Shown: one piece after another, positions 946 to 55,227 of the stretch
Numbering within the stretch: position 1 is the stretch's first letter
Layout: the number at the start of each line of letters is the position of its first letter
IMG/VR virus record: IMGVR_UViG_3300020442_000005
Location: 209,026 to 273,025 of that record
Strand: one strand, 5' to 3'
DNA: 64,000 nt
The notes under the pieces: model-generated
Database searches by the model: none
The model's input: the letters and a program-made list of their open reading frames with translations, nothing else
What the model was told of the DNA's origin: nothing
Program-made: the position numbers and the translations under genes

Positions 946-1547
946 CCTTCGACTTCTGCAGCTGAGTCAACAACGCTTTCAGGTACTTGTTCACCCTCTT
1001 TGTCTCCACCCGGAAGATACTTGAGAATCATATCGATGCCTGGTACAACACTTAAAACTTCGCTCCAGGATAGATTGCAAAGAGAATCAGCAACTTTTTC
1101 AGCCATTTCCTCCGCCGGCTCCCCAAAAATAGTTTGCAGCTTTTGCGAAAACTCTCCATCTTTATCTAATCCCAACGTTTTTGGAATGTCCTGCACGATC
1201 AAACCTATTAGAGTTGAAGAAAACTTCTGTAGGGTTTCTTTGCAGCCACCTTTACCCATTACGATATTGGCAATATCTTTGATACCCGATTTCTCAAAGA
1301 ACTTTGTGATTGCAGTGGCACCGATTCCTTTAGGTTCAATTTTAAGCATGTCAACGACTGCTTTACCAACTGCCTTTTTAACTCCACCAAAAGCTCCATC
1401 AGCCAAATCTGTAAAGAAATCAAATATTCCTTCGTTGAGTGACCGGATTCTTTGAGTTTCTCTGTATTCCAGCAAGATTGAATGTCTTACGTATGATCTT
1501 ATTTGAGATTCAATAATAAGATCTCGTCTACTTTGCGTGTAGTACAT
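942..1547 (-). CDS. putative virion protein with leader-like motif (QIRSYVRHSILLE)
   Basis: GGAG SD; motif similar to the array leader, repeated LxE sites. Confidence 0.65.
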   Translation of the reverse strand: MYYTQSRRDLIIESQIRSYVRHSILLEYRETQRIRSLNEGIFDFFTDLADGAFGGVKKAVGKAVVDMLKIEPKGIGATAITKFFEKSGIKDIANIVMGKGGCKETLQKFSSTLIGLIVQDIPKTLGLDKDGEFSQKLQTIFGEPAEEMAEKVADSLCNLSWSEVLSVVPGIDMILKYLPGGDKEGEQVPESVVDSAAEVEG

Positions 1548-19391: not shown

Positions 19392-19396
19392 CTTTC

Positions 19397-39302: not shown

Positions 39303-39324
39303 GGATCGACTTGTTCTGTCGACG

Positions 39325-39348
39325 GGAGGTGCTTGCACCTCCTTTTTT
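39325..39348 (+). terminator. intrinsic terminator
   Basis: GGAGGTG-CTTG-CACCTCC-TTTTTT. Confidence 0.85.
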
Positions 39349-39420
39349 ATTATGGTTTTCATATACTTTTGTCCTCAAACTGTATAATTATACTTTGTTA
39401 ATGATGGGCTGAGATGTTTC

Positions 39421-40227
39421 ATGAAAAATTATGTTTTAAGAAAAATCATATCAAATTTGATTGTTGAGAACTTTAAGGTCAGAGGTTATATAAAGCCGGC
39501 TGAGAGTTTTCACTCCCTTGGCGAATTACAGGCCATGGCAAATTATGTTTTAAATCTTCAGCGTGCTGGCTATGACGCGAGGGATAAAAATTCTGGACTG
39601 TTATTGAATTTGCTCTACGAATATATGCCCCATATTGAAGACGATATAGAAAGATACGGTGCGAGATTTGACATAACAAATGTATATAACTTTTTAGAAG
39701 ATTTTGCAAACCATCGAGTCTGGTCCTTTGAAGACCAGTTTGGCCAATATTTCCCGGACATAGGTAGTTTAAGATTCTCGTATTTTTATTCTAGGGGAGA
39801 CATGGAACCATATGTGCTTCTGGATGAGAACTACACAAAGCAATTGTATGGATCCACAGATAATGTATACACTGTGAAACATTATACTACCGAAGCTGGA
39901 TTGCAAAACATAGAAGCATCAATCCAAACTGGAAAACCTTTTGATATATCATGCTTCACTGCCATGAAAAAGGAATACTTTGACAAGAAATCAAATATTT
40001 TATTGACGCTCAAAGGTAACGTGAGGGCTGGCTTTAGATCTGACGTAAAATCTTTTGCTGTCGACAACGGTAGGAGAGCATGCAACTTATTTAGACTCGG
40101 ATATCCGGGGGAAGAAACAAATATCTGCGAAAACTTAGATGGATGCGAAGACAATGCTACGTCTATTTGGAATGAATATATCGCGACACCATTAGAAATT
40201 ATCAAAGTAGAGGTATTAAACAGATGA
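39421..40227 (+). CDS. leader-bearing protein, possible ART-fold domain
   Basis: VLRKIISNLIVE leader; KHYT...ISCFT...WNEYI (H-S-E spacing). Confidence 0.6.
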   Translation: MKNYVLRKIISNLIVENFKVRGYIKPAESFHSLGELQAMANYVLNLQRAGYDARDKNSGLLLNLLYEYMPHIEDDIERYGARFDITNVYNFLEDFANHRVWSFEDQFGQYFPDIGSLRFSYFYSRGDMEPYVLLDENYTKQLYGSTDNVYTVKHYTTEAGLQNIEASIQTGKPFDISCFTAMKKEYFDKKSNILLTLKGNVRAGFRSDVKSFAVDNGRRACNLFRLGYPGEETNICENLDGCEDNATSIWNEYIATPLEIIKVEVLNR

Positions 40228-40580
40228 GAACATGGAAACCATTATTTTTTGAAAACAGTTCGCTGCCATTGATTCTTTCCGTAGTGGCGCCAATTGATAT
40301 CGGAGCTATCACACTTGGACCATTCGTATTTTCGCGTGGAGAAATGTCTGAGGTCACTAAAAATCATGAAGCAATCCATTGGCAGCAATATATAGAAACC
40401 GGGATTATTGGTTTTGTGTTGCTATACTTGCTTTACTGGGTGATTGGTTTGATAAAATACAGAGATGGACAAAAGGCATACTACCAGATACCCTTTGAAC
40501 AAGAGGCATATGAAAATCACGAGGATATGGAATATTGCCTAACCAGAAAAAGATATGAATGGTTCCGGAGAAGCATCTAA
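40224..40580 (+). CDS. small zincin-like HExxH membrane-associated protein
   Basis: AITLGPFVF...HEAIH..Q...AY..I.FE.EAY. Confidence 0.7.
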   Translation: MRTWKPLFFENSSLPLILSVVAPIDIGAITLGPFVFSRGEMSEVTKNHEAIHWQQYIETGIIGFVLLYLLYWVIGLIKYRDGQKAYYQIPFEQEAYENHEDMEYCLTRKRYEWFRRSI

Positions 40581-42157
40581 TGTGGCAGCTAAGAAAATAC
40601 ATACGGAATTTATTGTTTGAAAATTTATCAGACGCAACTATTCCACCTCCACCAAAGGAATCAATCGAAGAGTTAAGTTCGGTTATTAACCAGTACTACG
40701 ACCGTGTTAACGATGATTCTGTTCAGTACGATTTAGACGAAAGGATGGAATTGCTGTTTAACGAAGTGGTCGAAAAGAACAGTGGGGAAAACGTTGTTGA
40801 ATATGTCAAGGAACTAAAGACGCATCCACTGGAAATAGTGTCAGCACTCAAGGAATACTTTGCAAGAAAAAGACCCGAAGATGTCGCCGCAGATTTTGGT
40901 ATTGACTGGAAGAGTGATAGCGTTGATATGAAAACTATTAACAACAGTTATTCATATCCATCCGGTCACACTGCTCAATCTTATTATGTTGCACTTAAAC
41001 TATGTGATAGATATCCACAGCTTAGGAATGAGTTGTTTGAAGTAGCAGAAGCAGTTGCGCAATCTAGAATCGATCGTGGCGTACATTTTCCTTCTGATTT
41101 AGATGCTGGTCGAATTGTAGCAAATCAGCTATACCAACAAAATAAAACAAGCACTCCTGTAATTCTTGAGGGCATGGTAAGTCCAAACTCCGTATCAGGA
41201 AAATATGCAATATGGGCAGACATATCAGCGGATCAGGCTGGAAACCTCGACGAAGATTTGACGTCAATTGATTTTCTAATGTACGACTGGTCTGCCGCGG
41301 TTAAACACATTGAAGACGAGCTCAAAGAAGCCACCGCAGACGGTCGCCCAGGCGCACTAGAAATGGTCAGGGACTACGGGATTCTTGAAGCCATTACAGA
41401 TAGCGCTGTTGCATGCATGCGAGTGAGACCGTACGGCGATTACGAAGGATGCAATAGTGCTTGGGAAGTTATTAGATCAGCGGCAGATGGCGGTTTGGGT
41501 CCGACAATGTACGATTTAATTATGTCAATCGCTCCGAATGGTTTGTTTGCTGATAGATCAGAAGTTTCTCCGGCTGCTCAAAGTGTGTATCATTTTTATG
41601 CAAACAGACGAACCAGCGTAGATAAAGATTTTCTCGACCCGGGTGGATTCACAGATACAGAATATGATGACTGTAGGACCTACGGTCGCAGAGCTGATCC
41701 GTTACGTTATGCGACTAGAATGATGGCAATGGATTATTTTGATACCGAATGGCCAGACGAGCACACTCAGTTTAAGGACAATGCTGACCTTTCAGTTCTA
41801 GAACAAGCCGGCAGCGGAGATGCTGACACCTATTTCAGAGTTGTGTCAGAATGGATTATTGATAATGTGGATCCCGACTGGGATGAAGATACCTGGTACG
41901 AATGGAAAGTAGACGGTGAGCTTGATCTAATGCGTTATTGGAAGTCCGGCCCAGATCCAACCTTCGAAGATCCGGATTATTTAAATCTTTCGTACAATAC
42001 AAACTATGCGGTTTCTAGTTTCGAAGAGATGGAAGAAAACCATATGGCATTTATAAATGAAATATCAGATATGATACCAGGCTCAGAGGAAAGATTTTAT
42101 GAAGATCCCGAAGCCTTACATTTTGCTGTCAGAGATTTTTTCAGGGAGAGAGTTTGA
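40580..42157 (+). CDS. leader plus PAP2 phosphatase plus GNAT-like fusion
   Basis: MWQLRKYIRNLLFE; K..F.R.RP, SYPSGH, SR...GVHFPSD; then VILE; GLGPTMYD...GLFADR..VS.AA. Confidence 0.78.
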   Translation: MWQLRKYIRNLLFENLSDATIPPPPKESIEELSSVINQYYDRVNDDSVQYDLDERMELLFNEVVEKNSGENVVEYVKELKTHPLEIVSALKEYFARKRPEDVAADFGIDWKSDSVDMKTINNSYSYPSGHTAQSYYVALKLCDRYPQLRNELFEVAEAVAQSRIDRGVHFPSDLDAGRIVANQLYQQNKTSTPVILEGMVSPNSVSGKYAIWADISADQAGNLDEDLTSIDFLMYDWSAAVKHIEDELKEATADGRPGALEMVRDYGILEAITDSAVACMRVRPYGDYEGCNSAWEVIRSAADGGLGPTMYDLIMSIAPNGLFADRSEVSPAAQSVYHFYANRRTSVDKDFLDPGGFTDTEYDDCRTYGRRADPLRYATRMMAMDYFDTEWPDEHTQFKDNADLSVLEQAGSGDADTYFRVVSEWIIDNVDPDWDEDTWYEWKVDGELDLMRYWKSGPDPTFEDPDYLNLSYNTNYAVSSFEEMEENHMAFINEISDMIPGSEERFYEDPEALHFAVRDFFRERV

Positions 42158-43368
42158 TGGCAAATAAAAGAATACCAAGAAAGAAGGGTCAAAGAAGAAA
42201 CAGTAAAAAGCATTCTGATCTGTACACTGATGAAAACCCAAAAGGAACTATAAAAGGTTTGAAGTTTGCGACTGTCAAAGATGCAAAGGCTAGCGTGAGT
42301 AAAATTAAAAAGTCCTCGCGTTCACATAATCACAAGACACAAGCTGCAATTGCAATGGAACAACGAGCAAAAGCAGCCGGCAAGAAATCGGCTGCAGCAG
42401 TTTATAGAAAGTTTATTGAGCAACAAAAGAAGAAAACTAAAGCAAAAAACGAAACTACGAGGGCTGATCTGTTTTTGGATAGACCAACGTCTCATGTTGA
42501 CTACGACGAGTCTGTAAACGATCAAATAGCTGATTACATGGTCGATATGATGCTTATCAGAGAATACATACGGGACATTATTGTTGAGAATATGGTTTCT
42601 GTTGCAGGCGATACTATGATAACAAAGTTCAGGGAGCTTATCAATCGGTACGACGCACCAACGGGGTGGCAAGTCGAGGATCCACATTTCTTTGAGTCCG
42701 GTGGAGGAAATAGCTTGATTGGCCAAATACGTTTGCAAGGCACAAGGGAAGCACTTCCGAATCTTGACAGTGAGGTCGAAAAGCAAAAACTAAGCGCAAT
42801 ATACGCTCCATTTGCAAACCGCCGAGGTTGGAATCTTCTTCAAGTACGTGAGGAACCATTGCCATCTAGAAACCCAATTATTATGTACGAGTTAAAGTTT
42901 GATAAACAACCAAACACAAAAAATACAAACTATTTCATGTCAACTCAAGAACTACAAATCAAAGAGCAAGTGCTTCTTCATCTTACTAAGGAAAGTTATC
43001 TAAAGTCAATTCAGTCAGGCGGTTTTAAACCGGCAAGAAGCTCGTCAGACGGAATAAACTTTGGTAACGGCCGAGCCTATTTTGTATCGTGCTCTAGAAT
43101 GGATTGGGAAGATTCAAGAGATGCTGCAATTGGCTGGTTTTCTCGCGCGACAGAAACTGAGGGTTTTGCTGGAATCGACCCAACAGAAAAGCAAGTCTTG
43201 TTGGTAATTGATCCAGAGAAGATGAGGAACAACATACAATTTTACGTTGATACAGAATTTGGCTACGGTTCGGGTACAGTAGGTTATTCCGGAGTTTGGG
43301 GCGGGAAAGCAATTTATACCCCGGGGCACATACGGGCAACTGCAATTGAAGAGGTTATAGATTTATGA
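42157..43368 (+). CDS. basic N-terminal module plus internal leader plus putative ART-fold domain
   Basis: HSDLYTDENPKGTI module; internal LIREYIRDIIVE; LLHLT...I...GFKP...AYF...LLVID...IYT..HI. Confidence 0.65.
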   Translation: MANKRIPRKKGQRRNSKKHSDLYTDENPKGTIKGLKFATVKDAKASVSKIKKSSRSHNHKTQAAIAMEQRAKAAGKKSAAAVYRKFIEQQKKKTKAKNETTRADLFLDRPTSHVDYDESVNDQIADYMVDMMLIREYIRDIIVENMVSVAGDTMITKFRELINRYDAPTGWQVEDPHFFESGGGNSLIGQIRLQGTREALPNLDSEVEKQKLSAIYAPFANRRGWNLLQVREEPLPSRNPIIMYELKFDKQPNTKNTNYFMSTQELQIKEQVLLHLTKESYLKSIQSGGFKPARSSSDGINFGNGRAYFVSCSRMDWEDSRDAAIGWFSRATETEGFAGIDPTEKQVLLVIDPEKMRNNIQFYVDTEFGYGSGTVGYSGVWGGKAIYTPGHIRATAIEEVIDL

Positions 43369-44129
43369 GCACACTTAGAAAAACAATACGAAAAATATTA
43401 CTAGAGTCGGCTGTGTTGGCGGACGAACAGGCAATTGCCGTAATGAAAAAAGAAGATTTGATCTTCGTAGTTAGCATGTTAGCACCTTATGAAGGAACTA
43501 TAGCTCTTTTGCGAAGGAAATACTATGACATCGAAAACGACGATTACAACCTGTCCGATGCGGTTGGGCAGATTCAATTAGGTTCTGCGGGCGAAGAAAC
43601 AATGCAGGTTTCATTCTCTGAACTTTACCGTCAATTTCGAAACAAAGGTCTGGGCAAGCTATTATATAACGTTGCTTTGATGGCATGCACTGACGAAAAC
43701 GTTTGGCTTATGTCTGACAGGAACGATGTTTCATCCAAGGCTCAAAGGATTTGGCAAACTTGGAGCAAGCTTCCTGAATTATATGATATCGAGCAAATGG
43801 ATCATGACATGATAGGCGATGATTATTTTTTGACTGATGACGAAGATGATGATATGGTGCAAAACTCTTTCAACAATGACCAATGGCGTCCGGTATCCCC
43901 TCGAATCGAGCGCTTGCCTGACGAAGCGTACACAAGTCACGAGATGTCCGACGGTCGTTTTTTCACGGTTGAAAAAGATTCATGGTTCTTCTATGACCCA
44001 GATTACAAAAAACAGTATTTGGATTCTGGATTAACAAAAAGATTCCAGATGAAAGATGCGTACGCATTGTCAAGTTATCTAGAACAAGAAGGTTTACTTT
44101 ACTACTCGTACGAGGGACCTGCTTCATGA
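43365..44129 (+). CDS. leader plus GNAT-like acetyltransferase
   Basis: LRKTIRKILLE; FRNKGLGKLLY (motif A), LMSDR..VS..A..IW. Confidence 0.75.
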   Translation: MSTLRKTIRKILLESAVLADEQAIAVMKKEDLIFVVSMLAPYEGTIALLRRKYYDIENDDYNLSDAVGQIQLGSAGEETMQVSFSELYRQFRNKGLGKLLYNVALMACTDENVWLMSDRNDVSSKAQRIWQTWSKLPELYDIEQMDHDMIGDDYFLTDDEDDDMVQNSFNNDQWRPVSPRIERLPDEAYTSHEMSDGRFFTVEKDSWFFYDPDYKKQYLDSGLTKRFQMKDAYALSSYLEQEGLLYYSYEGPAS

Positions 44130-44740
44130 AAAATTTAAGACGATACATAAGGAGCACGCTTTTAACTGAGGTTTGTGCCGGTGCAACAGCGCAGATTCAG
44201 AAAGGTCTAGACGTTATTGAACAAAGAGACCTTAGAGTTGAAGTCTACATAGATGGAAACGATGGATATGATGTGATTCTAGTGTCAGGAGATGGGATAA
44301 GACGTGGACGGTTTGAGGTTACGACAGTCAAGAATTGCCCGGCTTATTCGACTATGTGGACCGAAGTTGATTGGAATCTAAAAAAAACCGGCGTTGGGGC
44401 TGTAATGTATGACATTGCAGTAGAGGTTGCTACAAAACTTGGCGGACACTTGGCGTGTGATAGAGGATCTGTGAGCGATTCCGCGAAGCGCATGTGGAGA
44501 TACTATACTTCATCGGATGATTACGAAGCATTCCAGTTAGACACACCAGACTCTACTTTTACGCCGATAAAAAGTGATGATTGTCAACAGTACATTTTTC
44601 ACAGAGAAACAAAATTATATAGTGGTGATGAAGGTTTCGAACAAGAATTTATGGCATCGCCTTTTACAAAAGCTTTTCGAAAAAAGAAAATAACGACAAT
44701 TCCATGTTTGGGTAATCGATACTCGGAGATTAGAGTATGA
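44126..44740 (+). CDS. leader plus GNAT-like acetyltransferase
   Basis: MKNLRRYIRSTLLTE; LKKTGVGAVMYD, LACDR.SVS..A...W. Confidence 0.72.
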   Translation: MKNLRRYIRSTLLTEVCAGATAQIQKGLDVIEQRDLRVEVYIDGNDGYDVILVSGDGIRRGRFEVTTVKNCPAYSTMWTEVDWNLKKTGVGAVMYDIAVEVATKLGGHLACDRGSVSDSAKRMWRYYTSSDDYEAFQLDTPDSTFTPIKSDDCQQYIFHRETKLYSGDEGFEQEFMASPFTKAFRKKKITTIPCLGNRYSEIRV

Positions 44741-45693
44741 AAAATTTAAGACAATACATAAGAAAGATTTTGATAGAGTCTGCCAATACAATACACCCAA
44801 AGATTAAAAGCATGCTTGACGAGCTAGAAGAAAATTATGGAGAGATTAACATCCAAAATTATCCCAACCAGGGGCAACTTGTTGAGATAAGGTTTTATGC
44901 TGGCGCTCAGCATGGTGATAGGTATTATAACACTGGTGTTGGCGGTGGATCTGATGCTGGCGCCGTGTTCGCAATGTATTCCAAGGATAGTGTTGTTCCA
45001 TCTATGTCTACGAAAATAGGCAATTGCAATGGTGCAGTGCCCATCGGTGGTGTAGATGGCAGTCAGATCGCAGTAGAATATGGCTTTGGTCCGTTGCTTT
45101 ATGATGTTCTTTTTGATGCGGCAGTTATGCTGAGTGGAGCTACTGGGCTGACTTGCGATTACTATTCCGTAAGCGACGAAGCATACAACGTTTGGAATTA
45201 TTATCTAAAAAACCGGCCAGATATGATTGCAAAACAAAAAGACTTGACACAATATCCTCGCACTCCCGATGAATCCGATGATTGTACCGGGCCTGGTGCC
45301 GGCGGAAGTTTTGGATATAGATCCGTTGCGAAGCGGTTCGGCTTTGATAAATCTTACGGTGTAAAAGCGTCAGACAAGGATGGCATGCCGGTCCGGACCG
45401 GAGAACTTACACCGGAGTTTATCGATCATTGGTTCGACCCGGAAAACCCTCTTTCGAAAACCTATCATAGGAAAAGCGGTGGCACACCGGTCATCGATTA
45501 CTTGCGATCAAATTTTCTTTTAAACCCTAAGGCTGCAAAAGTCATAGGGCAACCGTACTCTCCGGCTGAGCTAAAAAAAGTATGGGACAGAACCATAGGC
45601 ATAGAAGAGGCCGGATATCCAGATTACATGGCAAAAAAAGCAAAGCAATGGCAGCAAAACTTTGGAGCAAACGCCGAGGATCTATTAGCATGA
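44737..45693 (+). CDS. leader plus GNAT-like acetyltransferase
   Basis: MKNLRQYIRKILIE; GFGPLLYD, GLTCD..SVS.EA..VW. Confidence 0.7.
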   Translation: MKNLRQYIRKILIESANTIHPKIKSMLDELEENYGEINIQNYPNQGQLVEIRFYAGAQHGDRYYNTGVGGGSDAGAVFAMYSKDSVVPSMSTKIGNCNGAVPIGGVDGSQIAVEYGFGPLLYDVLFDAAVMLSGATGLTCDYYSVSDEAYNVWNYYLKNRPDMIAKQKDLTQYPRTPDESDDCTGPGAGGSFGYRSVAKRFGFDKSYGVKASDKDGMPVRTGELTPEFIDHWFDPENPLSKTYHRKSGGTPVIDYLRSNFLLNPKAAKVIGQPYSPAELKKVWDRTIGIEEAGYPDYMAKKAKQWQQNFGANAEDLLA

Positions 45694-46382
45694 ACCAATT
45701 GAGAAATTACATAAGGCAAGTTTTAGTTGAAATGGCTGCACCGCGACCAATTGACTTAGATGCTGTATATTATCATGGGACACCTACGAAGGCAAATGCC
45801 GAGGATATAATGATCAATGGTATAAAGGCACCTGATTTGTCGTCCAGAGAAGGCTATCTTCGACCAGTTGAAGGAAAAGTTTATCTCACAAGAGATTTGG
45901 CATACGCTCAAATCTATGCTTTGGGCGGTGACCTTGCAGGCAAAAATGTTCCTGATTCGTTTAAGGGATATGGACAATACGGGTATGTTTTTGTTGTCGA
46001 CGGCAAACAGCTAAAAGACATACAACCAGATGAAGACAGTGTTGGCGAATTGGTATATAACGAGGAAATAGATTGGCTTGATGAGTTAGCTAAGGATATC
46101 CTTAAATACGAAGAATACGATGACTTCGGGCAGGATCTTGGCTATAGAAACCTTTACGATGCGATAATTGGCGGCGAATACGACGCATGGGCTGCCGGAG
46201 GCAAAATTTTGTTAGATGAAATGTCTGATGATCAAAAACTTAATCTACTCGATTATGGTGCCCATGTTGCACACACAGGAAATCTCATACCAAAAGAAAC
46301 ATGGAGAATAGAAAGAAATAAAACACCCGAATTGCAGAAAGATGGTTCGAACTTTTTTGATCTAGCGGAGCGGATAAAGTGA
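45690..46382 (+). CDS. leader plus putative ADP-ribosyltransferase-fold protein
   Basis: MNQLRNYIRQVLVE; YYHGT...I...GI...VYLT...A..YA...PDED. Confidence 0.65.
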   Translation: MNQLRNYIRQVLVEMAAPRPIDLDAVYYHGTPTKANAEDIMINGIKAPDLSSREGYLRPVEGKVYLTRDLAYAQIYALGGDLAGKNVPDSFKGYGQYGYVFVVDGKQLKDIQPDEDSVGELVYNEEIDWLDELAKDILKYEEYDDFGQDLGYRNLYDAIIGGEYDAWAAGGKILLDEMSDDQKLNLLDYGAHVAHTGNLIPKETWRIERNKTPELQKDGSNFFDLAERIK

Positions 46383-47050
46383 AAGTGTTAAGGCAATACG
46401 TAAGACAGATACTTCTGACAGAAGCAATGAAAACAGAAACGGATCTACCCGACGATATCGGCGTTGAAATTTACGATTATAAAAAATCGGCTGCCTATAT
46501 TGGCTTTTGCGAAATTGATAAAAACGGAAATTACGTAAAAAGTTTATCTCCCGGACTTGAAGTAGCTGAAAATACAATTTTTAGTTCAGAACCAGAACCT
46601 TTACCCGAGAAGTTTCGGCATCCCTCCGGTATTTTTGGCACCGTTGGAATAGAACTATTGAGAGACTGGGGAGATCCGGACTGTGATGGCGCATGGATCA
46701 TAACTAACACGGTAGCGACACCAGGCTACGGTCCATTACTTTACGATGTTGCAATTGAATGGGCTACCATGCATGGCACCGGCCTTGTGTCTGATCGATA
46801 TAATGTTTCAGATGACGCGCGAAAAGTTTGGGCAAAGTATGCGGCACGGATTGATGTCGACAAGTTTCAATGTGACGACGAAAACAATGCATTAACACCT
46901 ATTGACTCTGATAACTTAGAGCAACATGCCGCAAGGAAAAACTTGCCAGGTGGTTCAGACTTTACCAGTAGTCCTTTGAGCAAACGCTATTCAAAGAGTC
47001 CCACAAGAATAAATAGCCTTAAGTCCCTCAGAAAACTGTTTTTTACATAA
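46379..47050 (+). CDS. leader plus GNAT-like acetyltransferase
   Basis: VLRQYVRQILLTE-AMKT; GYGPLLYDVAIEWA, GLVSDR..VS..A..VW. Confidence 0.72.
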   Translation: MKVLRQYVRQILLTEAMKTETDLPDDIGVEIYDYKKSAAYIGFCEIDKNGNYVKSLSPGLEVAENTIFSSEPEPLPEKFRHPSGIFGTVGIELLRDWGDPDCDGAWIITNTVATPGYGPLLYDVAIEWATMHGTGLVSDRYNVSDDARKVWAKYAARIDVDKFQCDDENNALTPIDSDNLEQHAARKNLPGGSDFTSSPLSKRYSKSPTRINSLKSLRKLFFT

Positions 47051-47063
47051 ATGAGATTACAAA

Positions 47064-47894
47064 ATGAAATACTTACAACAATATATAAGGCAGCTGCTCA
47101 TAGAAGTATACGAACTGGATGACCAGCAGAAAGTGAATAGGGATAGTCTAATCAGAATGGACTACGGTGGAAAAGAAATGGCACACGTTGCGGGTCTAGA
47201 CACGGCTGAAGAACAACGTGAAGATCGGGAACTTCTTCGAAGATATCAAGAAGGACTGCTGTCTACAAGCCATGGTAAAAAATTGATTAGAGCCTTTCGA
47301 AACGGTGACGTCACGATCTTGCATGATATCACATACGAGGGCGCCGCGGCAAGATCAGGTTTAGGAGGAACAAAAAATAAAAAAGCTTTAGCTTCTGACT
47401 GGATCCGTAAATATGGAAGATCTGGTAACGACACTCTCTCGACAATTGCTTGTTATCTTCCTCCTACCGAGTCACTTCCCGGCATAGAACTCCATGGTAA
47501 TTCCAAGTTTGTCATGTCTAACAGGGGAATGATCATGAAAGGTTATCCAGTATTTGTTGCAAAAGAAGATGTGATGTCACAGACGATCGGCGCATTAGAC
47601 GACAAAATGAAAGCACACTGGAAAACCTCCGGCATGCCAAAGAGGCCGGCAAAATCTAGAGTACGATTCGATGATTTTGGTGATATGGAAGGAATCCAGG
47701 GCTTGCGGCATCTTAAAAAGTTGCTTGTATCCAATGAAACTCTTCTAGATAATTGGACAATAATAGGCACATACATTGGTAGTAGTGGAAATTCTGACAA
47801 TGATGTACAAGCATGGATAGCAGATTCCCTTAGCCTTGGATTGCCCTGTAACGTATATAATCAATATGGCAACCTAACGAGGTATGAACCATGA
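47064..47894 (+). CDS. leader plus LDNW-family protein (putative ART fold)
   Basis: MKYLQQYIRQLLIE; ILH...LST...KGYPV...DVMSQT...NETLLDNW. Confidence 0.6.
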   Translation: MKYLQQYIRQLLIEVYELDDQQKVNRDSLIRMDYGGKEMAHVAGLDTAEEQREDRELLRRYQEGLLSTSHGKKLIRAFRNGDVTILHDITYEGAAARSGLGGTKNKKALASDWIRKYGRSGNDTLSTIACYLPPTESLPGIELHGNSKFVMSNRGMIMKGYPVFVAKEDVMSQTIGALDDKMKAHWKTSGMPKRPAKSRVRFDDFGDMEGIQGLRHLKKLLVSNETLLDNWTIIGTYIGSSGNSDNDVQAWIADSLSLGLPCNVYNQYGNLTRYEP

Positions 47895-48604
47895 AAAACT
47901 TAAGAGAATACATAAGACAAATACTGACTGAATCAGCATATAACAGACGAGACGCGTTCATCGCGGATTTATCCAGCGCAAATTTCGATCATCACTACCG
48001 TGAAAAAGGACAAGATGATGAGGCGTATAGACGGATGTCTGCCACTGGACGTCAACTAAAGAAGGCTTTTACTTCACACGCGGACAGGGATTGGCTGAAC
48101 AGTCTAGTATATGTCCACTGGACAAGAAAGAGACGAAAAGCACTTGCGTTTCTTGCCCCGGAAATAATTAAAGATGTAAGGGTTCAATCTTCACGCGATG
48201 AATTAAGCACAATGGTGTATAAACCTGGCGCTGTGGATGGAAGCGGTTATGATTTCGGCAAATACGGATTACTTATTCGTGGCTTTGTTACACTGTTAAG
48301 CAACGACATGAACTCCGTTGATAGTGGGTACACAGGAGGCTACGCACAAGCCGATCCACAAAGGGTAGCCTCGTCCGGTGCGAATAAGGGGATTGGAGTA
48401 GCAGTCGTTGACGACATAGCTTTAGATGAGAGCGAATGGGCTCCTGTCTTCGACGGAGGCGGTAACGAAGCATTCGTCGACAACTGGAATATTTATGGAG
48501 TGATTGTTCCAGACGAAGAACACGAAACGTTTTCTAGATTCCTAGAAAAAATCAAACAACAAACAGGAAGAGAATACTTATTACTAAAAGGGAGTGAACT
48601 CTGA
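47891..48604 (+). CDS. leader plus DNW-family protein (putative ART fold)
   Basis: MKNLREYIRQILTE; YVHW...DELST...NEAFVDNW. Confidence 0.6.
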   Translation: MKNLREYIRQILTESAYNRRDAFIADLSSANFDHHYREKGQDDEAYRRMSATGRQLKKAFTSHADRDWLNSLVYVHWTRKRRKALAFLAPEIIKDVRVQSSRDELSTMVYKPGAVDGSGYDFGKYGLLIRGFVTLLSNDMNSVDSGYTGGYAQADPQRVASSGANKGIGVAVVDDIALDESEWAPVFDGGGNEAFVDNWNIYGVIVPDEEHETFSRFLEKIKQQTGREYLLLKGSEL

Positions 48605-49035
48605 TGAAAAAATTACGTAAATTTATAAGAAAAACATTGCTCAACGAGAATCCAGGCGCAAAGTTTGGTTTAGACAAATGGACTTACGACTCGTATCTAG
48701 ATAAAATTGCAGATTTAATCATGAGCGGTAAACTTGGGCTGATGGAATCTGGTCTTATGATGGCAGAGACATATGGATTAATCGAGGATAAGCCGCCCTT
48801 TAAGGTCGTGAATGAAATTGAGGGTCCTTACAATTACGGATTGACTTTTATATCAAAGAACCTATTCCTTGTCGATGTGACCATACTGGATCCGGATCTT
48901 GGAAACCGGATTTGGGCAAAAAGAAATGCCAGGAATGCACCTATGATCCAAGAGCCACCAACACACGGACCAGCGGCACGTCAGCCTTTACAGTTTCCGC
49001 TGCGCATCATATTTGGATATCTGGAAAGAGAATAA
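48604..49035 (+). CDS. leader plus unknown domain
   Basis: MKKLRKFIRKTLLNE; KIADLI..G similar to 50366 gene. Confidence 0.68.
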   Translation: MKKLRKFIRKTLLNENPGAKFGLDKWTYDSYLDKIADLIMSGKLGLMESGLMMAETYGLIEDKPPFKVVNEIEGPYNYGLTFISKNLFLVDVTILDPDLGNRIWAKRNARNAPMIQEPPTHGPAARQPLQFPLRIIFGYLERE

Positions 49036-49038
49036 ACC

Positions 49039-49668
49039 ATGAAGTACTTGCGGCAATACATAAGAAAGATACTTTTGACGGAAGCGATGAAAACACCAGC
49101 AGATCTGCCGGATGACATCGTCGTTGTAATTGACGCCGATAGTAAAGAAGCATCAATTTATTATGGTCTGGCCAATAATCCTTCCGAGTACGCACCTGAG
49201 CTGAAACCTGAGCTCTATGGTCTCAGCTCAACCGACTACATGGGCGCGATAGACATATATTCACCAGCAAAGGGGCTTTTTTATCCTTGGTATGGGAATT
49301 GTGGCGACGCTTGGATGGTCGGCGGCTCTGCTGCTCAAGAAGGCTTCGGGCCTTTGCTCTATGATATAGCAATTGAGTGGGCTACACAAAATGGTGGTGG
49401 ACTTATTTCTGACAGAAGCAGCGTATCCCCCGATGCTCAGGACGTTTGGTCCTACTACGAACGAAACAGAGATGACGTAACAGCCCATCAGCTTGATGAC
49501 CTTGAGAATACTCTTACACCTGAAGATGAAGATAACTGCGATCAAAAGATTGGCAGGTCAACCGTATCGGGGATGTATGATACCTGGCAAGATAGTCAAT
49601 TAAGTAAGCGTTATACAAAGCCACCAACAACAATGCAAGCGCTTGGCAAAAAACTGGTGATCCTATGA
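49039..49668 (+). CDS. leader plus GNAT-like acetyltransferase
   Basis: MKYLRQYIRKILLTE-AMKTP; GFGPLLYDIAIEWATQNGGGLISDR. Confidence 0.72.
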   Translation: MKYLRQYIRKILLTEAMKTPADLPDDIVVVIDADSKEASIYYGLANNPSEYAPELKPELYGLSSTDYMGAIDIYSPAKGLFYPWYGNCGDAWMVGGSAAQEGFGPLLYDIAIEWATQNGGGLISDRSSVSPDAQDVWSYYERNRDDVTAHQLDDLENTLTPEDEDNCDQKIGRSTVSGMYDTWQDSQLSKRYTKPPTTMQALGKKLVIL

Positions 49669-50336
49669 AACAATTACGGCAATACATAAGAAAGACTCTT
49701 CTTACGGAAGCAATGAAGATGCCGGCTGATCTCACAGAGAACATGTATGTTCTTATCGAAGAGAATCGCGCAGGTGACTACTTTGAAGTTACGATTAATG
49801 ATGCAAAACCAGCACAAAGATACCCAAGATCTGGCATAATAGCGGAGCTGATGGTCGGAAAGGCAGAGGACCACAACGGCCTGAATTGTGATGGAGCTTG
49901 GGTAATCATGAGTTCCGAGGCAGAGCAAGGTTATGGTCCTCTAGTTTATGACATTGCAATGGAATACGTTGGAGACGATGGGCTAATGTGCGATCGATCC
50001 GATGTGTCCTTCGAAGCTGCAGATGTTTGGGATTTTTATCTTAATTCTAGACCCGACGTCAAAGCGGTGCAGCTTGATTTTCACGAAAAACCTTTCCTCA
50101 CTCCAGATAACATGAAAGATGATTGCGACGGCCAAGTTACCCTAGCCAGGCACGTTGATAGATGGTCAAGTATGGAAGCTGGATTCGACCCTGACGATCC
50201 GTACCATAATCACCAATGGATGGATCATTGGTCGACAAAGAAATATGTTAAGCAGGGGACACCTATAATGGACGAGCTTAGGATGCGAGGGGCAATCTAT
50301 TTCGACAGGGATGACACCGGTCACTACTACTTTTAA
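49665..50336 (+). CDS. leader plus GNAT-like acetyltransferase
   Basis: MKQLRQYIRKTLLTE; GYGPLVYDIAME, GLMCDR..VS..A..VW. Confidence 0.72.
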   Translation: MKQLRQYIRKTLLTEAMKMPADLTENMYVLIEENRAGDYFEVTINDAKPAQRYPRSGIIAELMVGKAEDHNGLNCDGAWVIMSSEAEQGYGPLVYDIAMEYVGDDGLMCDRSDVSFEAADVWDFYLNSRPDVKAVQLDFHEKPFLTPDNMKDDCDGQVTLARHVDRWSSMEAGFDPDDPYHNHQWMDHWSTKKYVKQGTPIMDELRMRGAIYFDRDDTGHYYF

Positions 50337-50365
50337 CTTAGTAAACAATGAGGCAAAAGACAGCA

Positions 50366-50857
50366 ATGAAACTACTAAGAGGGACAATCAGAAAAATACT
50401 TCTGCAAGAGATGGCTCAAAGACCACCCCATATCCCAACAACTGATCCTGAAATGGAAAGAAAAGTTGCGGATTTATTAACAGGCACCATACGAGACATA
50501 GCTCTGGGTGTAGAGTTTATGAAGACTATAGACCTTACTAAAGGCGTGAAAGCCCCCGATTCATACATAAAATTTGATATCGGCCGGAAGAAAATTAAAA
50601 TGACTGAATATCACTTCAAGGTCACCCAATCTTTTTACGATGCGATCGTGGACCAACTTAAAATCAAACGACGTAAAGCCAACCCAAAGTATCACCATCA
50701 TTTGATGATTGGCCGATGGACCGAGGGTGACGCTATAATTTCAATCTCGATACCGTATGACCTCATTGGACGCGACAAATACAGAGCGGTCATGTTACGG
50801 TCTGACGAACCATACGTCGAGCACTTGCACATTGAAATTAAAGAGCCGGCTGGGTAA
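50366..50857 (+). CDS. leader plus unknown domain
   Basis: MKLLRGTIRKILLQE; alternative start 50348. Confidence 0.68.
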   Translation: MKLLRGTIRKILLQEMAQRPPHIPTTDPEMERKVADLLTGTIRDIALGVEFMKTIDLTKGVKAPDSYIKFDIGRKKIKMTEYHFKVTQSFYDAIVDQLKIKRRKANPKYHHHLMIGRWTEGDAIISISIPYDLIGRDKYRAVMLRSDEPYVEHLHIEIKEPAG

Positions 50858-50871
50858 TTAGGAAAGCCACA

Positions 50872-51441
50872 ATGAAAAATTTACGACAATACATAAGACG
50901 GATAATAAGCGAAGCCTTAGATGGAAGTGGCAATCAGCAAGAAGCAGCGTACGCTGTAATATACACCGCTGGTTACCTCGACTCATCTGACAGAGGGCTT
51001 GGTCAGCTTATCAACAAAAATCCAAAGCTTGGCGAGCAGGGTGATAAGTGGATTCCGCTCGATGATGCCCTTGCTAACGTGCATTCTGCTTTAATTGCAG
51101 CGGCTTCTGCTATTAAAAGAGAAAATCCAGAACTCGACCTTTCGGAGGAGAGTAGTATTCTTCGAGAGGGTCAGGCTGCTGGTCAGGCAGACTTCCGCGA
51201 AAGCATATACAAGTACATTGAACAAGTAGAATCTCTTGTCAATAGAGAATCGCCTATGGGAATGAGTGCTGCTGAAGGCTTGAGAGTCTTTGGAGTCAAA
51301 ACTCTGTCTCCCGGGGTTACGCTGGCAGATACCGCAGTCGCAGACGTGAGAGATCTGATCTCTTTAATGGACGACGACAATGTTCTGAGCTGGCTGGACG
51401 AAGTTGAAACCATGAAACAGTACGGTGAGCTCAAACTATAA
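50872..51441 (+). CDS. leader plus unknown helical domain
   Basis: MKNLRQYIRRIISE. Confidence 0.7.
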   Translation: MKNLRQYIRRIISEALDGSGNQQEAAYAVIYTAGYLDSSDRGLGQLINKNPKLGEQGDKWIPLDDALANVHSALIAAASAIKRENPELDLSEESSILREGQAAGQADFRESIYKYIEQVESLVNRESPMGMSAAEGLRVFGVKTLSPGVTLADTAVADVRDLISLMDDDNVLSWLDEVETMKQYGELKL

Positions 51442-52055
51442 TGAAACATTTAAGAAATTACATAAGAAAGATTCTTCTAACTGAAGCAATGAAAACCCCA
51501 GCCATGCTACCAGATGACACTGTCATTGTAATAAAACCAGTACGTCATTATATAACAATTTATTACGGTAAAGCTGATAATCCTTCTAGTAAGAGTGGAA
51601 CTGATGGTGTTGGAATCCTTGGAACAATTTCTATATTTCCAACCGGTCGACGCTCACCGGACGGCTACTTTGTCGGACTTGGTAACTGCGATGGAGCTTG
51701 GATGGTCGGACTTGCAGCTGCATCCGACGGTTGGGGTCCGCTGTTATATGACGTCGCAATCGAATGGGCAACTCAAAACGGCGGAGGACTAATTTCCGAT
51801 CGTGGAGCTGTAAGTGTACCAGCTCAAAAAGTATGGTCCTACTACGAGCAAAACAGAGATGACGTGACAGCCCACCAGCTTGATGACCTCAATAATACTC
51901 TTACACCTGAGGAGGAAGATAACTGCGATCAATCGATTGGTAGGCGGACAATAACTGGTATGTATAATACCTGGCAAGACAGTCAATTAAGTAAGCGGTA
52001 TACAAAGCCGCCCACAACAATGAACGCATTAGGCGATAAACTAGTGATTTTATGA
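51441..52055 (+). CDS. leader plus GNAT-like acetyltransferase (close paralog of 49039)
   Basis: MKHLRNYIRKILLTE; C-terminal half nearly identical to 49039 gene. Confidence 0.72.
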   Translation: MKHLRNYIRKILLTEAMKTPAMLPDDTVIVIKPVRHYITIYYGKADNPSSKSGTDGVGILGTISIFPTGRRSPDGYFVGLGNCDGAWMVGLAAASDGWGPLLYDVAIEWATQNGGGLISDRGAVSVPAQKVWSYYEQNRDDVTAHQLDDLNNTLTPEEEDNCDQSIGRRTITGMYNTWQDSQLSKRYTKPPTTMNALGDKLVIL

Positions 52056-52774
52056 AGAACTTGCGGCAATACATAAGACAGACAATTCTCGAGAATAAGG
52101 AGGCATTTTTAGATGATCTCCTGTCAAATCCAAATTGGGATGAAGGTGCTCGCGATGCATTTAGTGACGAAACATACGATGACTATATTCAAAAATATCC
52201 TAAAGCCAGGAAACGCGGCAGATTAGTCAAGCAGGTGTGGGCTAAACACGTGGATAGAGAATATATTAATTCACTCATATACATTCACTGGGGCGGTATT
52301 TCAAGTATATACAATATTTTAAAATCGTCAATCGATGGCAGTCCAAAGAAGGATGAATTAGCATGCTCAGGTTATGAACCAGGAAAAGTCGCTGAAAGAA
52401 ACAGAGTCGGCAGTACAGGTTTGGTTATTGAAGGGCATGTCTCTTTGTTTGGAAACCACATGAACGACGTATTTTCAGGCGAGCTAGATCTAATTAAAAA
52501 GTTTAATCCAGAAATGGGTCCAACATCAGGCTACAACAGAGGTACTCTTTCGGCAATTGCCGACACGTTTATCTTGGACAGAGAATCTTTTATCCATCGA
52601 AACAATCCGGATCAAAACCGTACTGAGGCTTTTTTAGACAATTGGAAGATCAAAGCATTAGTGTTCGAGCCTGATAGTGATCTCTGGCGAGGTCAGGCGC
52701 AAAAGGATTTGGTAAATTCAATCCGCACAGAATTCAAGTTAGACATCCCCATCCTTAGACCTAGAGATCTGTAA
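52052..52774 (+). CDS. leader plus DNW-family protein (putative ART fold; paralog of 47891)
   Basis: MKNLRQYIRQTILE; H.DRE..NSL.Y.HW...DELAC...TEAFLDNW. Confidence 0.6.
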   Translation: MKNLRQYIRQTILENKEAFLDDLLSNPNWDEGARDAFSDETYDDYIQKYPKARKRGRLVKQVWAKHVDREYINSLIYIHWGGISSIYNILKSSIDGSPKKDELACSGYEPGKVAERNRVGSTGLVIEGHVSLFGNHMNDVFSGELDLIKKFNPEMGPTSGYNRGTLSAIADTFILDRESFIHRNNPDQNRTEAFLDNWKIKALVFEPDSDLWRGQAQKDLVNSIRTEFKLDIPILRPRDL

Positions 52775-53439
52775 TGAAACATTTGCGACAATACATAAGA
52801 GGAATACTTCTAACTGAAGGTATGAAAACAGAGGCCGATCTGCCTGACGGCATTGGTATTATAATCAGGCAAAGAGCCTGGGAAGACAATCCGTCTAATA
52901 TTGTAATATCGTACTACAACTTGAATACAGAATATCCTCTGGAAACCGACAGAGAAAACATCATCCCATGGGGTATGGTCACCCTCGGCTTAGTATATCC
53001 ATATGAGCCGGCATACAACGGGCAAGATGAACGTTTCAATCTCCCGGAAGATACTAGTAATCTTACATGCGGAAATGCTTTTCAGATTTTCACCACCGAT
53101 GCTGCTGATGGATGGGGTCCCTTACTTTATGACGTCGCAATCGAATGGGCTACAATGAATGGTAACGGACTAATATCTGATCGATCTGGCGTGTCCGAGG
53201 ATGCTCAAGCCGTTTGGGAATACTACATGTACAATAGACCGGACGTCCAAAAGTTCCAATGCGATGATCACTTAAACACCTTAACTGCCACGTTAGATGA
53301 TAACGTCGATATGAATATACCCATGGCTGACGGCCGCTCATATTTTCCGGAAGATTTAGAGAATGATCCCCTAGGAAAAAGATACACGAAGGAACCGACA
53401 CGGATAAGACAATTAGGCGATAAACTGGTGATCCGATGA
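52774..53439 (+). CDS. leader plus GNAT-like acetyltransferase
   Basis: MKHLRQYIRGILLTE; GWGPLLYDVAIEWA, GLISDR..VS..A..VW. Confidence 0.72.
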   Translation: MKHLRQYIRGILLTEGMKTEADLPDGIGIIIRQRAWEDNPSNIVISYYNLNTEYPLETDRENIIPWGMVTLGLVYPYEPAYNGQDERFNLPEDTSNLTCGNAFQIFTTDAADGWGPLLYDVAIEWATMNGNGLISDRSGVSEDAQAVWEYYMYNRPDVQKFQCDDHLNTLTATLDDNVDMNIPMADGRSYFPEDLENDPLGKRYTKEPTRIRQLGDKLVIR

Positions 53440-53807
53440 AACACTTGCGGCAATACATAAGATTATTATTGGAAAATAACGACGAGATGATAGAGCACAT
53501 TAATGGAATCATCGAAGATTATAAGCTTAGTGATATAGGTCCGGACCACTGGAACCAACTTGACGATATGATCGAAGATATCTTCCCAGGCACAAAACCG
53601 CCAAACATGAAAGTCTGGTCTGCCGCCCATCCATTGAATGGTGAGGTTTTCGAATCGTATGTGACACAAGAAGAAGCCTTGACCGTTCACCTTAGAGATG
53701 CAAACATTGTGCCGGCCGATAATGATGGCACCGAAGTTCAAACGCCAGAGATTCTAGATTGGGATCCAACTGGATATGCTTACATTATGAGTTGGGAAAT
53801 CAAATGA
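53436..53807 (+). CDS. leader plus acidic unknown domain
   Basis: MKHLRQYIRLLLE. Confidence 0.7.
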   Translation: MKHLRQYIRLLLENNDEMIEHINGIIEDYKLSDIGPDHWNQLDDMIEDIFPGTKPPNMKVWSAAHPLNGEVFESYVTQEEALTVHLRDANIVPADNDGTEVQTPEILDWDPTGYAYIMSWEIK

Positions 53808-54637
53808 AAAACTTGCGGCAATACATAAGAAAGATACTATCAGAAGTGTACGAGCTCACACCAGAAGAAGACAAGACTCGGCGAGAAGATTTTGCTTATC
53901 AATCTGCAGCTAGACGCTCCTTAGGCCTTCAAACATCGGCCGAGATTATAGAAGACAGGGAAGAATTGCAGAATTACCAGGCGCGACTTAAAAGCTCGAC
54001 GGAAGGTAAAGAACTAATCCGAAGATTTATGAAAGGAACAGACGTCACTATCATGCACAGCATAAACTATTCCGGATATGCTGCTTTAAGAGGTTATAAA
54101 TCCTTCGATAGAGTCGATAAAAGTATGCCTTTCCAAAGATGGATTGGGCAACACGGCCGAAAGGGAAAAGACGTGCTCTCATGTGTAGCATCCGACCAAC
54201 CGCTCGGTATGGACTTCTTAATCGGAAATGATAATCCAGCTGCAGCTCACGGATTCGGCTTCATTATGAAAGGATACCCGGTCTACATTTCCGAAACAGA
54301 CGTAATGTCTCAAACACTAGGAGCTATCCCGCCAGGTTTAGTAAAGCACCAAGAACAATCCGGTGTGGCAAAACGACCCGGTGACACTTCCGCAGGAATA
54401 ATCGAATTGGATTTCGGCTGGGCTGGAGAAGTGCTGCTCGACAACTGGACGATCATCGGCACGTACATGGATATAAGCGGCAACAATGATTTAGCTGTAT
54501 TTGAGACACTTGCTCGGGATTCGATCAGCATGTTCAAACCCGTCCCTTTCTATGTTTACGATGACGGATATTTTGTCGGCAAAATAACAGATAAAGATTC
54601 TATGTTTGAGGTAAGAGAAAAACTATTCGGATTTTAA
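53804..54637 (+). CDS. leader plus LDNW-family protein (putative ART fold; paralog of 47064)
   Basis: MKNLRQYIRKILSE-VYEL; IMH...LSC...KGYPV...DVMSQT...GEVLLDNW. Confidence 0.6.
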   Translation: MKNLRQYIRKILSEVYELTPEEDKTRREDFAYQSAARRSLGLQTSAEIIEDREELQNYQARLKSSTEGKELIRRFMKGTDVTIMHSINYSGYAALRGYKSFDRVDKSMPFQRWIGQHGRKGKDVLSCVASDQPLGMDFLIGNDNPAAAHGFGFIMKGYPVYISETDVMSQTLGAIPPGLVKHQEQSGVAKRPGDTSAGIIELDFGWAGEVLLDNWTIIGTYMDISGNNDLAVFETLARDSISMFKPVPFYVYDDGYFVGKITDKDSMFEVREKLFGF

Positions 54638-55068: not shown

Positions 55069-55227
55069 CCATAGGACATGGCTAAACCATATACCACCTT
55101 GCATACCTAGCATTCACACAAAAGCACCCTAAGGATTCGCAAGAATGAAAAGTGACTAGGTGTATAGGCTACCGGGCTTAGCTCCCTCTCACGCGACCTC
55201 GGGCATCTATCGGTTCGGTCACTCTCG

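Follow-up and report, generated by a model that had tools for sequence, protein, structure and literature searches.

What nine diverged, acetyltransferase-like genes do in a single phage, and why they begin with the same short peptide as a series of genes to which they are unrelated, is the question raised by the last 64 kb of the 273,025-bp IMG/VR contig IMGVR_UViG_3300020442_000005 (hereafter the window, that is, the whole 64,000-nucleotide stretch that was analysed). The nine genes, named here by their start positions in the window (g49039, for instance, lies at contig position 258,064), had been described in a first-pass annotation as paralogous acetyltransferases with a conserved core and a hypervariable N-terminal half; structural models and profiles support their placement in the GNAT (acyl-CoA N-acyltransferase) fold, as a strongly diverged branch specific to this lineage. 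Their N-terminal leader is common to an array of otherwise unrelated genes, ends in a cleavage-type motif and occurs on a contig that also encodes a T4-type head. The explanation that we favour, with a confidence that goes about halfway, is that the leader may be a capsid-targeting and cleavage tag, by which diversified enzymes would be loaded into the head and delivered together with the DNA.

Nine paralogues and their predicted fold

All nine genes were found where they had been reported (Table 1). All-versus-all BLASTP links them with E-values from 1e-5 to 7e-98, and a hidden Markov model (HMM) of the family (132 members), run against the open reading frames (ORFs) of the window, retrieves exactly these nine, with E-values from 1e-19 to 8e-79. 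The motifs listed in the first-pass annotation are reproduced by a MAFFT alignment of the nine copies (A1), in which eleven columns are invariant (G102, G104, Y108, L122, D125, V129, S130, A133, D153, T160 and D165 in the numbering of g49039); the upstream C.GAW motif, said to be usual, is present in seven of the nine copies and its cysteine alone in eight, and g43365 does carry the canonical motif A ascribed to it (R-N-K-G-L-G). To call g49039 and g51441 nearly identical in DNA over their C-terminal halves, as that annotation did, was too strong, nucleotide identity ranging from 51 to 91% per 15-codon block. The possibility that Cys88 and Cys167 form an obligatory disulphide or a catalytic pair was considered and rejected, only Cys88 being present in two of the nine copies.

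The hypervariability of the N-terminal half turned out to be family-wide, column entropy exceeding 3 bits at residues 31-90 as against 0.8-2.1 bits at residues 101-170. Along the polypeptide, residues 1-20 (the leader) are conserved, residues 31-90 are hypervariable with many indels, and residues 91-170 and 181-209 are again conserved; g51441 and g49039, which are 66% identical by BLASTP and 69-70% identical in the MAFFT alignment, drop to 17-43% at residues 31-90, and orthologues about 82% identical differ mostly at residues 51-90, a 9-residue indel included. The G-x-G of the β4-α3 turn, D125/R126 at the end of β5, S130, A133 and W137 are invariant or nearly so across the 132 diverse members of the family, G102 and G104 being conserved in at least 90% of them. 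The conserved part is the cofactor-side core (β4, the G-x-G loop, α3, β5 and α4), and the hypervariable part, approximately residues 31-90, consists of the N-terminal sheet and loops of the acceptor side, in agreement with the argument originally made for the position of the variable segment. The location of G102, G104, D125, R126, S130, A133 and W137 on the cofactor side would favour a working active site.

The GNAT fold was accepted because five lines of evidence agree, namely the structural model of g43365, Pfam matches below threshold, the BFVD matches of the g49039 model, sequence profiles and the ESM Atlas. The AlphaFold2 model of g43365, obtained from a 74-sequence alignment (predicted local distance difference test score, pLDDT, 87.4; predicted template-modelling score, pTM, 0.84), was compared with the PDB by Foldseek, the check that the annotation had suggested; its 50 best matches are all GNAT acetyltransferases, with probabilities of 0.93-1.00, E-values of 2e-3 to 9e-3 and template-modelling (TM) scores by target of 0.35-0.49, and include GCN5/PCAF, IAA acetyltransferase, nourseothricin acetyltransferase, Ard1 and AAC(6'). 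Within the g43365 subfamily (14 members), sub-threshold Pfam matches are to Acetyltransf_1 (6/14, best E 4.3e-4), Acetyltransf_10 (5/14) and Acetyltransf_7 (3/14), and one homologue is labelled by JGI as 'GNAT superfamily N-acetyltransferase'. The model of g49039 (pLDDT 87.7) matches viral 'NAT_SF domain' proteins in BFVD with a probability of 0.98; against the PDB its Foldseek result is ambiguous, weak GNAT matches being mixed with ASKHA ATPases, and an ASKHA reading (FtsA, acetate kinase) was dropped because of low probabilities (at most 0.13) and TM scores of about 0.1. The sole PDB match by sequence profile is the GNAT protein 2i79 (E 0.033), covering β2-β4, the G-x-G loop and α3; hhalign against a classical GNAT domain (P0121, residues 960-1130) places motif A in the same register (E 1.3e-3), and PDB profile searches with alignments A1 and A5 gave no useful match. 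The named neighbours of the family in the ESM Atlas are PF00583 clusters. The acetyltransferase reading therefore stands at the level of the fold, in models and profiles alike; the part of it that does not stand is the shortened motif A attributed to several copies, G-x-G being invariant in all nine of A1, where only the preceding Q/R position varies.

Some observations weigh against the assignment. No copy reaches the Pfam GNAT gathering score and neither NCBIfam nor PHROGs returns a GNAT match; the 132 other members of the family give three Pfam GNAT matches, all below threshold (best E 0.036). The Q/R of motif A is missing in most copies, and the canonical α1-α2 arm is missing in the g49039 model, which has strands at residues 27-33, 37-44 and 47-51; the g43365 model has one helix there, at residues 21-29.

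The family is very large: a profile of the nine paralogues retrieves 2,643 cluster representatives (clusters at 50% identity) with E-values of at most 1e-3, and 1,647 at 1e-10 or below, those labelled by source coming from marine and other environmental metagenomes. Among the 76 related loci fetched, none exceeds the nine copies found here within about 20 kb; the others have at most six. The family has no match at threshold in Pfam, PHROGs or NCBIfam, and no description of it was found in the literature searched. One protein of 1367 residues (P0121; two contigs, up to 124 kb) combines three family domains, two classical GNAT domains (Acetyltransf_1 and Acetyltransf_CG) and an HNH motif, and may be either a true polyprotein or the product of merged gene calls.

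A leader common to unrelated genes

The leader, M-K-x-L-R-Q-Y-I-R-x-x-L-L-(T)-E (15 residues), was found by a six-frame scan at the head of 19 consecutive genes between positions 39421 and 54637, and is not confined to the nine GNAT-fold genes; these 19 genes span at least nine unrelated families, and a looser form of the leader occurs on two dispersed genes outside the array. In addition to the nine, the array comprises a second paralogue group of four genes, one ADP-ribosyltransferase (ART)-like candidate and six singletons; many of the genes overlap their neighbours by ATGA or TAATG, and the array is a 15-kb, translationally coupled gene set. Eighteen of the 19 leaders end in [LIVF]-x-E, with the consensus LLTE↓A (the arrow marking a known or, as here, predicted cleavage point), and they are basic, with isoelectric points (pI) mostly of 10-11 (range 8.3-11.2). 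Four to six synonymous codons are in use at the leucine and arginine positions of the leader, so selection acts on the peptide.

Among all the array proteins, PAP2 was the sole family identified by Pfam, PHROGs and NCBIfam, and no Pfam MuF, portal or polyvalent-protein domain was found in these or in the fusion proteins examined. The PAP2 domain belongs to g40580 (Pfam PAP2, E 1.1e-11; NCBIfam PhoC, 2e-10; family HMM, 1e-19), the start of which overlaps the upstream stop codon as TAATG. The named ESM Atlas neighbours of g45690 are PARP/DarT and Arr; there is no Pfam match, and ART-like is given as a lead only. In the second paralogue group g47064 is more distantly related to g47891 and g52052, and its Atlas lead is DUF3626/DUF3841/OspC. 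The protein encoded by g42154 has a very basic N-terminal region of 120 residues (phrog_727, E 9.5e-5) followed by a complete leader in mid-protein, and gives the impression that another domain had been joined to the front of a leader-bearing gene.

Related contigs contain 168 leader-bearing ORFs, 66 encoding GNAT-fold proteins and 102 encoding others that fall into 43 clusters. The recognisable cargo consists of enzymes throughout: PAP2, AAA_33/zeta-like kinase, PolyA_pol/CCA-type nucleotidyltransferase, HAD_SAK_1, HD phosphohydrolase, DEDD exoribonuclease, phosphatidylserine decarboxylase and classical GNATs. Assembler contigs break or cross-match at leaders (49039-49073, 50872-50906 and 51441-51496), which behave like short dispersed repeats.

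Codons 7-9 of the leader read TAY-ATA-AGR and are kept across phages, the other leader codons varying freely (window 43365-54637; loci L001-L083). ATA is favoured at I8 (105 of 118 leaders, background 37%), AGR at R9 (111 of 118, background 54%) and TAC at Y7 (81 of 125, background 41%); at R5, AGR is avoided and CGN preferred (AGR in 20 of 127 leaders, background 54%). The p-values of this bias are inflated, since the leaders are related to each other, and the constraint may come from gated translation, from an RNA site or from gene conversion.

The phage also encodes a cluster of tRNAs (window 18122-19392), which comprises Leu(TAA), Arg(TCT), Gln(TTG), Thr(TGT), Gly(GCC) and a tRNA with the anticodon CAT; T4 likewise has tRNAs for the first five of these amino acids, and for Ile, Ser and Pro as well. 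The tRNA with CAT is paired G1:C72 and is therefore not an initiator; it could be an elongator Met tRNA or an AUA-reading Ile2 tRNA, between which an alignment with T4 tRNA-Ile did not decide.

The T4-type head and the proposed function of the leader

With the T4 head proteins of NC_000866 as queries, and by way of an alignment of gp21 homologues, a head module was reached on the window's own contig (115,400-136,002, locus L207). It encodes a large terminase, a portal, a protease, a scaffold-like protein and a major capsid protein, the portal matching T4 gp20 at 1.5e-28, the protease (L207 10001-10612) gp21 at 2e-21 and the major capsid protein gp23 at 8.7e-32; by these head genes the phage is therefore assigned to the T4 superfamily, as a jumbo phage with a gp21-type prohead protease. 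In a relative, IMGVR_UViG_3300045006_000427, homologues of gp20, gp21 and gp23 adjoin genes of the family, one GNAT-fold gene lying between portal and protease and another directly after the major capsid protein; NHDW01000006.1 (305 kb, binned as 'Methylococcaceae TMED69') has both a gp21-type protease/head module and a syntenic leader array.

In T4, Alt and the internal proteins are loaded into the core of the prohead by N-terminal capsid-targeting sequences of 10-19 residues, which gp21 then removes (PMC9026906, PMC3012670); the internal proteins are diverse, having only the capsid-targeting sequence in common (PMC3012670), and the N-terminus of gp21 has itself been proposed to be such a sequence (PMC9026906). 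The cleavage sites in the T4 record are FLTE65↓A in gp23, LRE-10 in gp24, ITE-6 in Alt, ITE-19 in IPI and LIE-9 in gp21; the 65-residue propeptide of gp23, ITE-6 (and LTE-619) of Alt and LIE-9 of gp21 are also given in the literature (PMC5694885, PMC9026906). T4 gp21 cuts after [L/I]-x-E, and the array consensus is the same as the maturation site of gp23. The leader has no sequence similarity to the T4 capsid-targeting sequence (T4 IPI starts MKTFKEFTSTTTPVSTITE); all that the two have in common is that they start with M-K, are amphipathic and end in x-E. The gp21 homologues of marine far-T4 phages start M-x-x-K-x-LLREYYAL-C-x-GG-x-C-x-D-LLTE-A-EK, which resembles the leader with an insert of eight residues, and a sister leader (MKITKRQLRQIIKEA, MKITRRQLRGLIVEA or MKISKRQLKRIIREE) is found on six small ORFs that flank the L207 head module (536-1644 and 17046-18417); the L207 ORF at 10993-11439, next after the 122-residue ORF that follows the protease, starts MAKVKRSVLKQLIKECLVEILVEG.

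Two side observations concern these N-termini. In an alignment of prohead proteases (A4; L086, L091, L093, L114, L156 and others), a Cys-x-G-G-x-Cys knuckle separates two leader-like halves, and the N-terminus of T4 gp21, MNEPQLLIETW, aligns to the first of these.

Since the phage has a gp21-type protease and the leader ends in its motif, we infer that the leader works like a T4 capsid-targeting sequence; its presence on about 20 unrelated genes, together with the cleavage motif, makes it more likely that the products are head-loaded cargo than that they are a family of cytoplasmic enzymes. The leader, which is basic and amphipathic, would serve to dock the protein in the core of the prohead, the prohead protease would clip it at the LLTE↓A site, and the mature enzyme would stay inside the head and reach the host along with the DNA; once there, the GNAT-fold proteins would acylate molecules of the host, the paralogues differing in target, and the acceptor-side segment 31-90 would have diversified, plausibly against different host targets.

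A number of findings weigh against this proposal. Some 100 kb separate the array from the head module, and it stands behind a strong terminator-like hairpin and a sigma70-type TATAAT box, a placement that would suit expression early and in the cytoplasm (in generic scans for sigma70 promoters and terminators the scores were at or below the shuffled expectation); the T4 late-promoter motif TATAAATA shows no enrichment. Among 80 major-capsid-protein loci of a related far-T4 clade none has a family gene within 10 kb, and the head-module location in IMGVR_UViG_3300045006_000427 (L055/L061) is therefore an exception. The mature parts of the array proteins are mostly acidic (pI 4.2-5.3), unlike the basic internal proteins of T4. 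Finally, fusions of HAD_SAK_1 with the family domain (four members on four contigs) keep the leader internally and have none at the N-terminus; such an internal leader is as compatible with a helix that is part of the domain, or that docks a partner, as with a cleavage site.

Several of these findings are also the basis of the alternative that survives best, which we regard as doubtful: that the array products are unpackaged, early cytoplasmic enzymes of host takeover or anti-defence, the leader being a regulatory or docking module, which could be a helix binding one partner (chaperone, scaffold or membrane) or a translational timing element residing in TAY-ATA-AGR. The expression signals directly 5' of an array far from the head genes, the genuine fusions that retain an internal leader, a position-specific synonymous codon bias that holds across phages, and the presence in the phage of tRNA-Arg(TCT), the CAT-anticodon tRNA, GroEL and DnaJ all speak for it; what it leaves unexplained is the gp21-type [L/I]-x-E ending of the leader and its resemblance to gp21 N-termini, as well as the sister leaders by the head module and the GNAT-fold genes inside the head module of a relative. 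A bolder version of the capsid-targeting explanation, put forward tentatively and unlikely to hold in full, would make the tag dual-coded, the protein serving capsid targeting and gp21 cleavage and the codons TAY-ATA-AGR a translation gate, maybe dependent on the phage tRNAs, by which cargo synthesis would be timed to prohead assembly; this widespread marine lineage of jumbo phages would then inject at least 20 enzymes, far more than any characterised phage, and the GNAT-fold family (about 2,600 clusters at 50% identity) would represent a new class of injected acyltransferase effectors whose targets diversify.

Improbable, in our judgement, is that the GNAT-fold proteins are catalytically inert, acting as binders, as decoys or as internal proteins with a structural role; they would retain the fold and the shape of the CoA loop and function by binding variable host targets or by filling the capsid. 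The Pfam GNAT threshold that is never reached, the non-conserved Q/R of motif A, the apparently non-canonical N-terminal arm and the strongly acidic character of the proteins, with their acidic loops, would suit such a role, and T4 IPI works by binding and not by catalysis (PMC3012670). Near-invariant residues on the cofactor side across 132 members are, however, typical of an active site and needless for a mere binder. Very improbable is an action on RNA or tRNA ends (aminoacyl-tRNA acetylation, RNA repair or modification) instead of proteins, as part of a toolkit for repairing or attacking RNA, suggested by fusion partners and leader-sharing neighbours such as a PolyA_pol/CCA-type nucleotidyltransferase head with an RNA-binding domain, HAD_SAK_1 (an RNA-repair 'Swiss army knife' HAD), AAA_33/PNK-like kinase and DEDD 3'-5' exoribonuclease: the fusions keep an internal leader and may therefore be neighbouring cargo genes joined end to end and not functional couplings, the PAP2, phosphatidylserine decarboxylase and ART-like cargo is unrelated to RNA, and no similarity to TacT/AtaT toxins was detected.

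The head module of IMGVR_UViG_3300045006_000427 (L061 9719-13507 and 16434-17045; L055 3973-12470) has further peculiarities: about ten pentapeptide-repeat proteins, each ending in a conserved ...MKPASRLEEIIQEELKRELKR tail, small ORFs that start MNL(K/R)QLIQEE, and one GNAT-fold domain fused to pentapeptide repeats.

The locus in its setting and among known systems

The genes of the window are densely packed on the + strand, with a GC content of about 41%, and few of their products match a curated family; the recognisable ones are MetK, MetH, SAH hydrolase, UvdE, a pyridoxal-phosphate (PLP) enzyme, a methyltransferase, a RecA/RadA-like ATPase and six tRNAs. The features discussed are collected in Table 1.

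Table 1. Position of the array genes, their expression signals and other features of the window (window coordinates)
Feature	Position	Strand	Basis or remark
Leader-like segment near N-terminus, IRSYVRHSILLEY, outside array	942..1547	-	leader scan
Methyl cycle genes (whole group)	9471-15759
S-adenosylmethionine (SAM) synthetase	9471-10475
QueF-like ORF	10426-10920
B12-dependent methionine synthase, full-length	10893-14429
S-adenosylhomocysteine (SAH) hydrolase	14431-15759
Leader-like N-terminus, MSEKILREYIKGLLLSN, outside array	29272..30396	+	leader scan
Terminator-like hairpin, 8 bp stem, T run	39324..39343	+	closes upstream unit
TATAAT box	39383-39388	+	32 nt 5' of first array gene
First array gene, 268 aa, shifted leader variant MKNYVLRKIISNLIVEN	39421..40227	+	no family match
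GNAT-fold copy 1, fusion	40580..42157	+	leader, PAP2 acid-phosphatase domain, C-terminal family domain
g42154, 404 aa, internal leader copy MMLIREYIRDIIVEN from nt 42556	42154..43368	+	phrog_727
GNAT-fold copy 2, canonical motif A	43365..44129	+	AlphaFold2, Foldseek, subfamily Pfam matches
GNAT-fold copy 3	44126..44740	+	alignment, BLASTP, family HMM
GNAT-fold copy 4, long C-terminal extension	44737..45693	+	alignment, BLASTP, family HMM
Leader-bearing 230-aa protein, ADP-ribosyltransferase-like lead	45690..46382	+	ESM Atlas neighbours
GNAT-fold copy 5, GTG start	46379..47050	+	alignment, BLASTP, family HMM
Leader-bearing, second paralogue group	47064..47894	+	BLASTP 7e-49 to g53804
Leader-bearing, paralogue of g52052	47891..48604	+	BLASTP 1e-30
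Leader-bearing 143-aa singleton	48604..49035	+	leader scan; no family match
GNAT-fold copy 6, reference copy	49039..49668	+	AlphaFold2, BFVD NAT_SF, 2i79 profile match
GNAT-fold copy 7	49665..50336	+	alignment, BLASTP, family HMM
Leader-bearing 163-aa singleton	50366..50857	+	leader scan; no family match
Leader-bearing 189-aa singleton	50872..51441	+	leader scan; no family match
GNAT-fold copy 8	51441..52055	+	BLASTP, per-block identity to g49039
Leader-bearing, paralogue of g47891	52052..52774	+	BLASTP
GNAT-fold copy 9	52774..53439	+	alignment, BLASTP, family HMM
Leader-bearing 123-aa singleton	53436..53807	+	no family match
Leader-bearing, paralogue of g47064; closes array	53804..54637	+	BLASTP

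On the 3' side of the array there is a non-coding gap of 550 bp (55069-55616), which holds a tandem pair of TTTC(A/G)CTATAATTGAAATTG at approximately 55,360-55,420; sigma70-like promoter matches occur in this region on both strands, at 55374-55401 (+) and 55622-55595 (-). Upstream of window position 1, the same phage (L004, L165) encodes GroEL (Cpn60), a sigma70-like factor, a peptide deformylase, DnaJ, an iron superoxide dismutase (Fe-SOD) and a pterin-4a-carbinolamine dehydratase; a walk along the contig outwards from the two ends of the window, with one more step on the upstream side, met auxiliary genes of this kind only.

The contig originates from marine metagenomes, and the identical genotype is found again in sequencing runs of another study, in which the independent marine contigs X2 and X3 (runs X1-X4) show zero differences across window positions 48900-53500. 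The sequence was found in DNA metagenomes only, by a general search of datasets of all kinds and with no search aimed at RNA datasets, and megablast and tblastn searches with the array and g49039 against 50,697 deposited phage genomes gave zero matches at the DNA or protein level.

The closest parallel is offered by the internal proteins of T4 (IPI, IPII, IPIII) and Alt: there too a short N-terminal propeptide (10-19 residues in T4, about 15 here), ending in the gp21 motif, is carried by unrelated, fast-diversifying proteins of a phage that has gp20, gp21 and gp23, and a class of enzyme that is known to be injected, represented in T4 by the ART Alt, has ART-like candidates as its counterpart here. 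The leaders themselves differ (MKxLRQYIRxxLLTE here, MKTYQEFIAE in T4); about 20 tagged genes form one operon-like array, whereas those of T4 are few and dispersed; the cargo, predicted to be packaged, consists mostly of acidic putative enzymes, in contrast to the small basic proteins of T4, and the leader also occurs inside fusions and is under synonymous-codon constraint. With the GNAT superfamily at large (GCN5/PCAF, Ard1/Naa10, PaiA, AAC(6') and nourseothricin acetyltransferase) the family has in common the core fold, the order of elements from β2 to β7, the G-x-G pyrophosphate loop at the start of α3 (R-x-x-G-x-G in g43365) and the variable acceptor side; it differs in scoring below every curated threshold, in an α1-α2 arm that appears to be replaced or reduced, in the N-terminal leader and in a family-specific C-terminal extension (Q-L-D-D...L-T-P-x-x-x-D-N-C...S-K-R-Y-T-K). 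MuF-fused and polyvalent proteins, the Dar proteins of P1 and the ejection proteins of phiKZ and SPN3US are alike in concept, being capsid-loaded enzymes delivered with the DNA, with propeptides removed by a prohead protease, but rely on domain fusion or on a propeptide of more than 100 residues instead of a short portable tag.

Capsid-targeting sequences and GNATs are already known; a literature search on the leader peptide, on TMED69 and on GNATs among head proteins found nothing relevant. With respect to the libraries and literature searched, what is new is the leader itself, how large the tagged array is and which enzymes it contains, a GNAT-fold family that is both very large and uncharacterised, and the occurrence of all these in an abundant lineage of uncultured marine jumbo phages. 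Even without packaging, a 15-residue module common to dozens of unrelated enzymes across phages stands, and so does the nucleotide-level constraint on leader codons 7-9. If the leader is indeed a capsid-targeting tag, the protein-injection strategy of T4 would here be stretched to about 20 tagged enzymes encoded in one operon, a cargo in which a fast-diversifying acyltransferase-fold family, itself abundant in ocean metagenomes, predominates. The tag would then provide a function-agnostic route to the cargo proteome of uncultured phages, every tagged ORF being a candidate, would mark out a large new set of candidate enzymes for anti-defence and host takeover, and would add a second natural packaging tag for engineered phage protein delivery.

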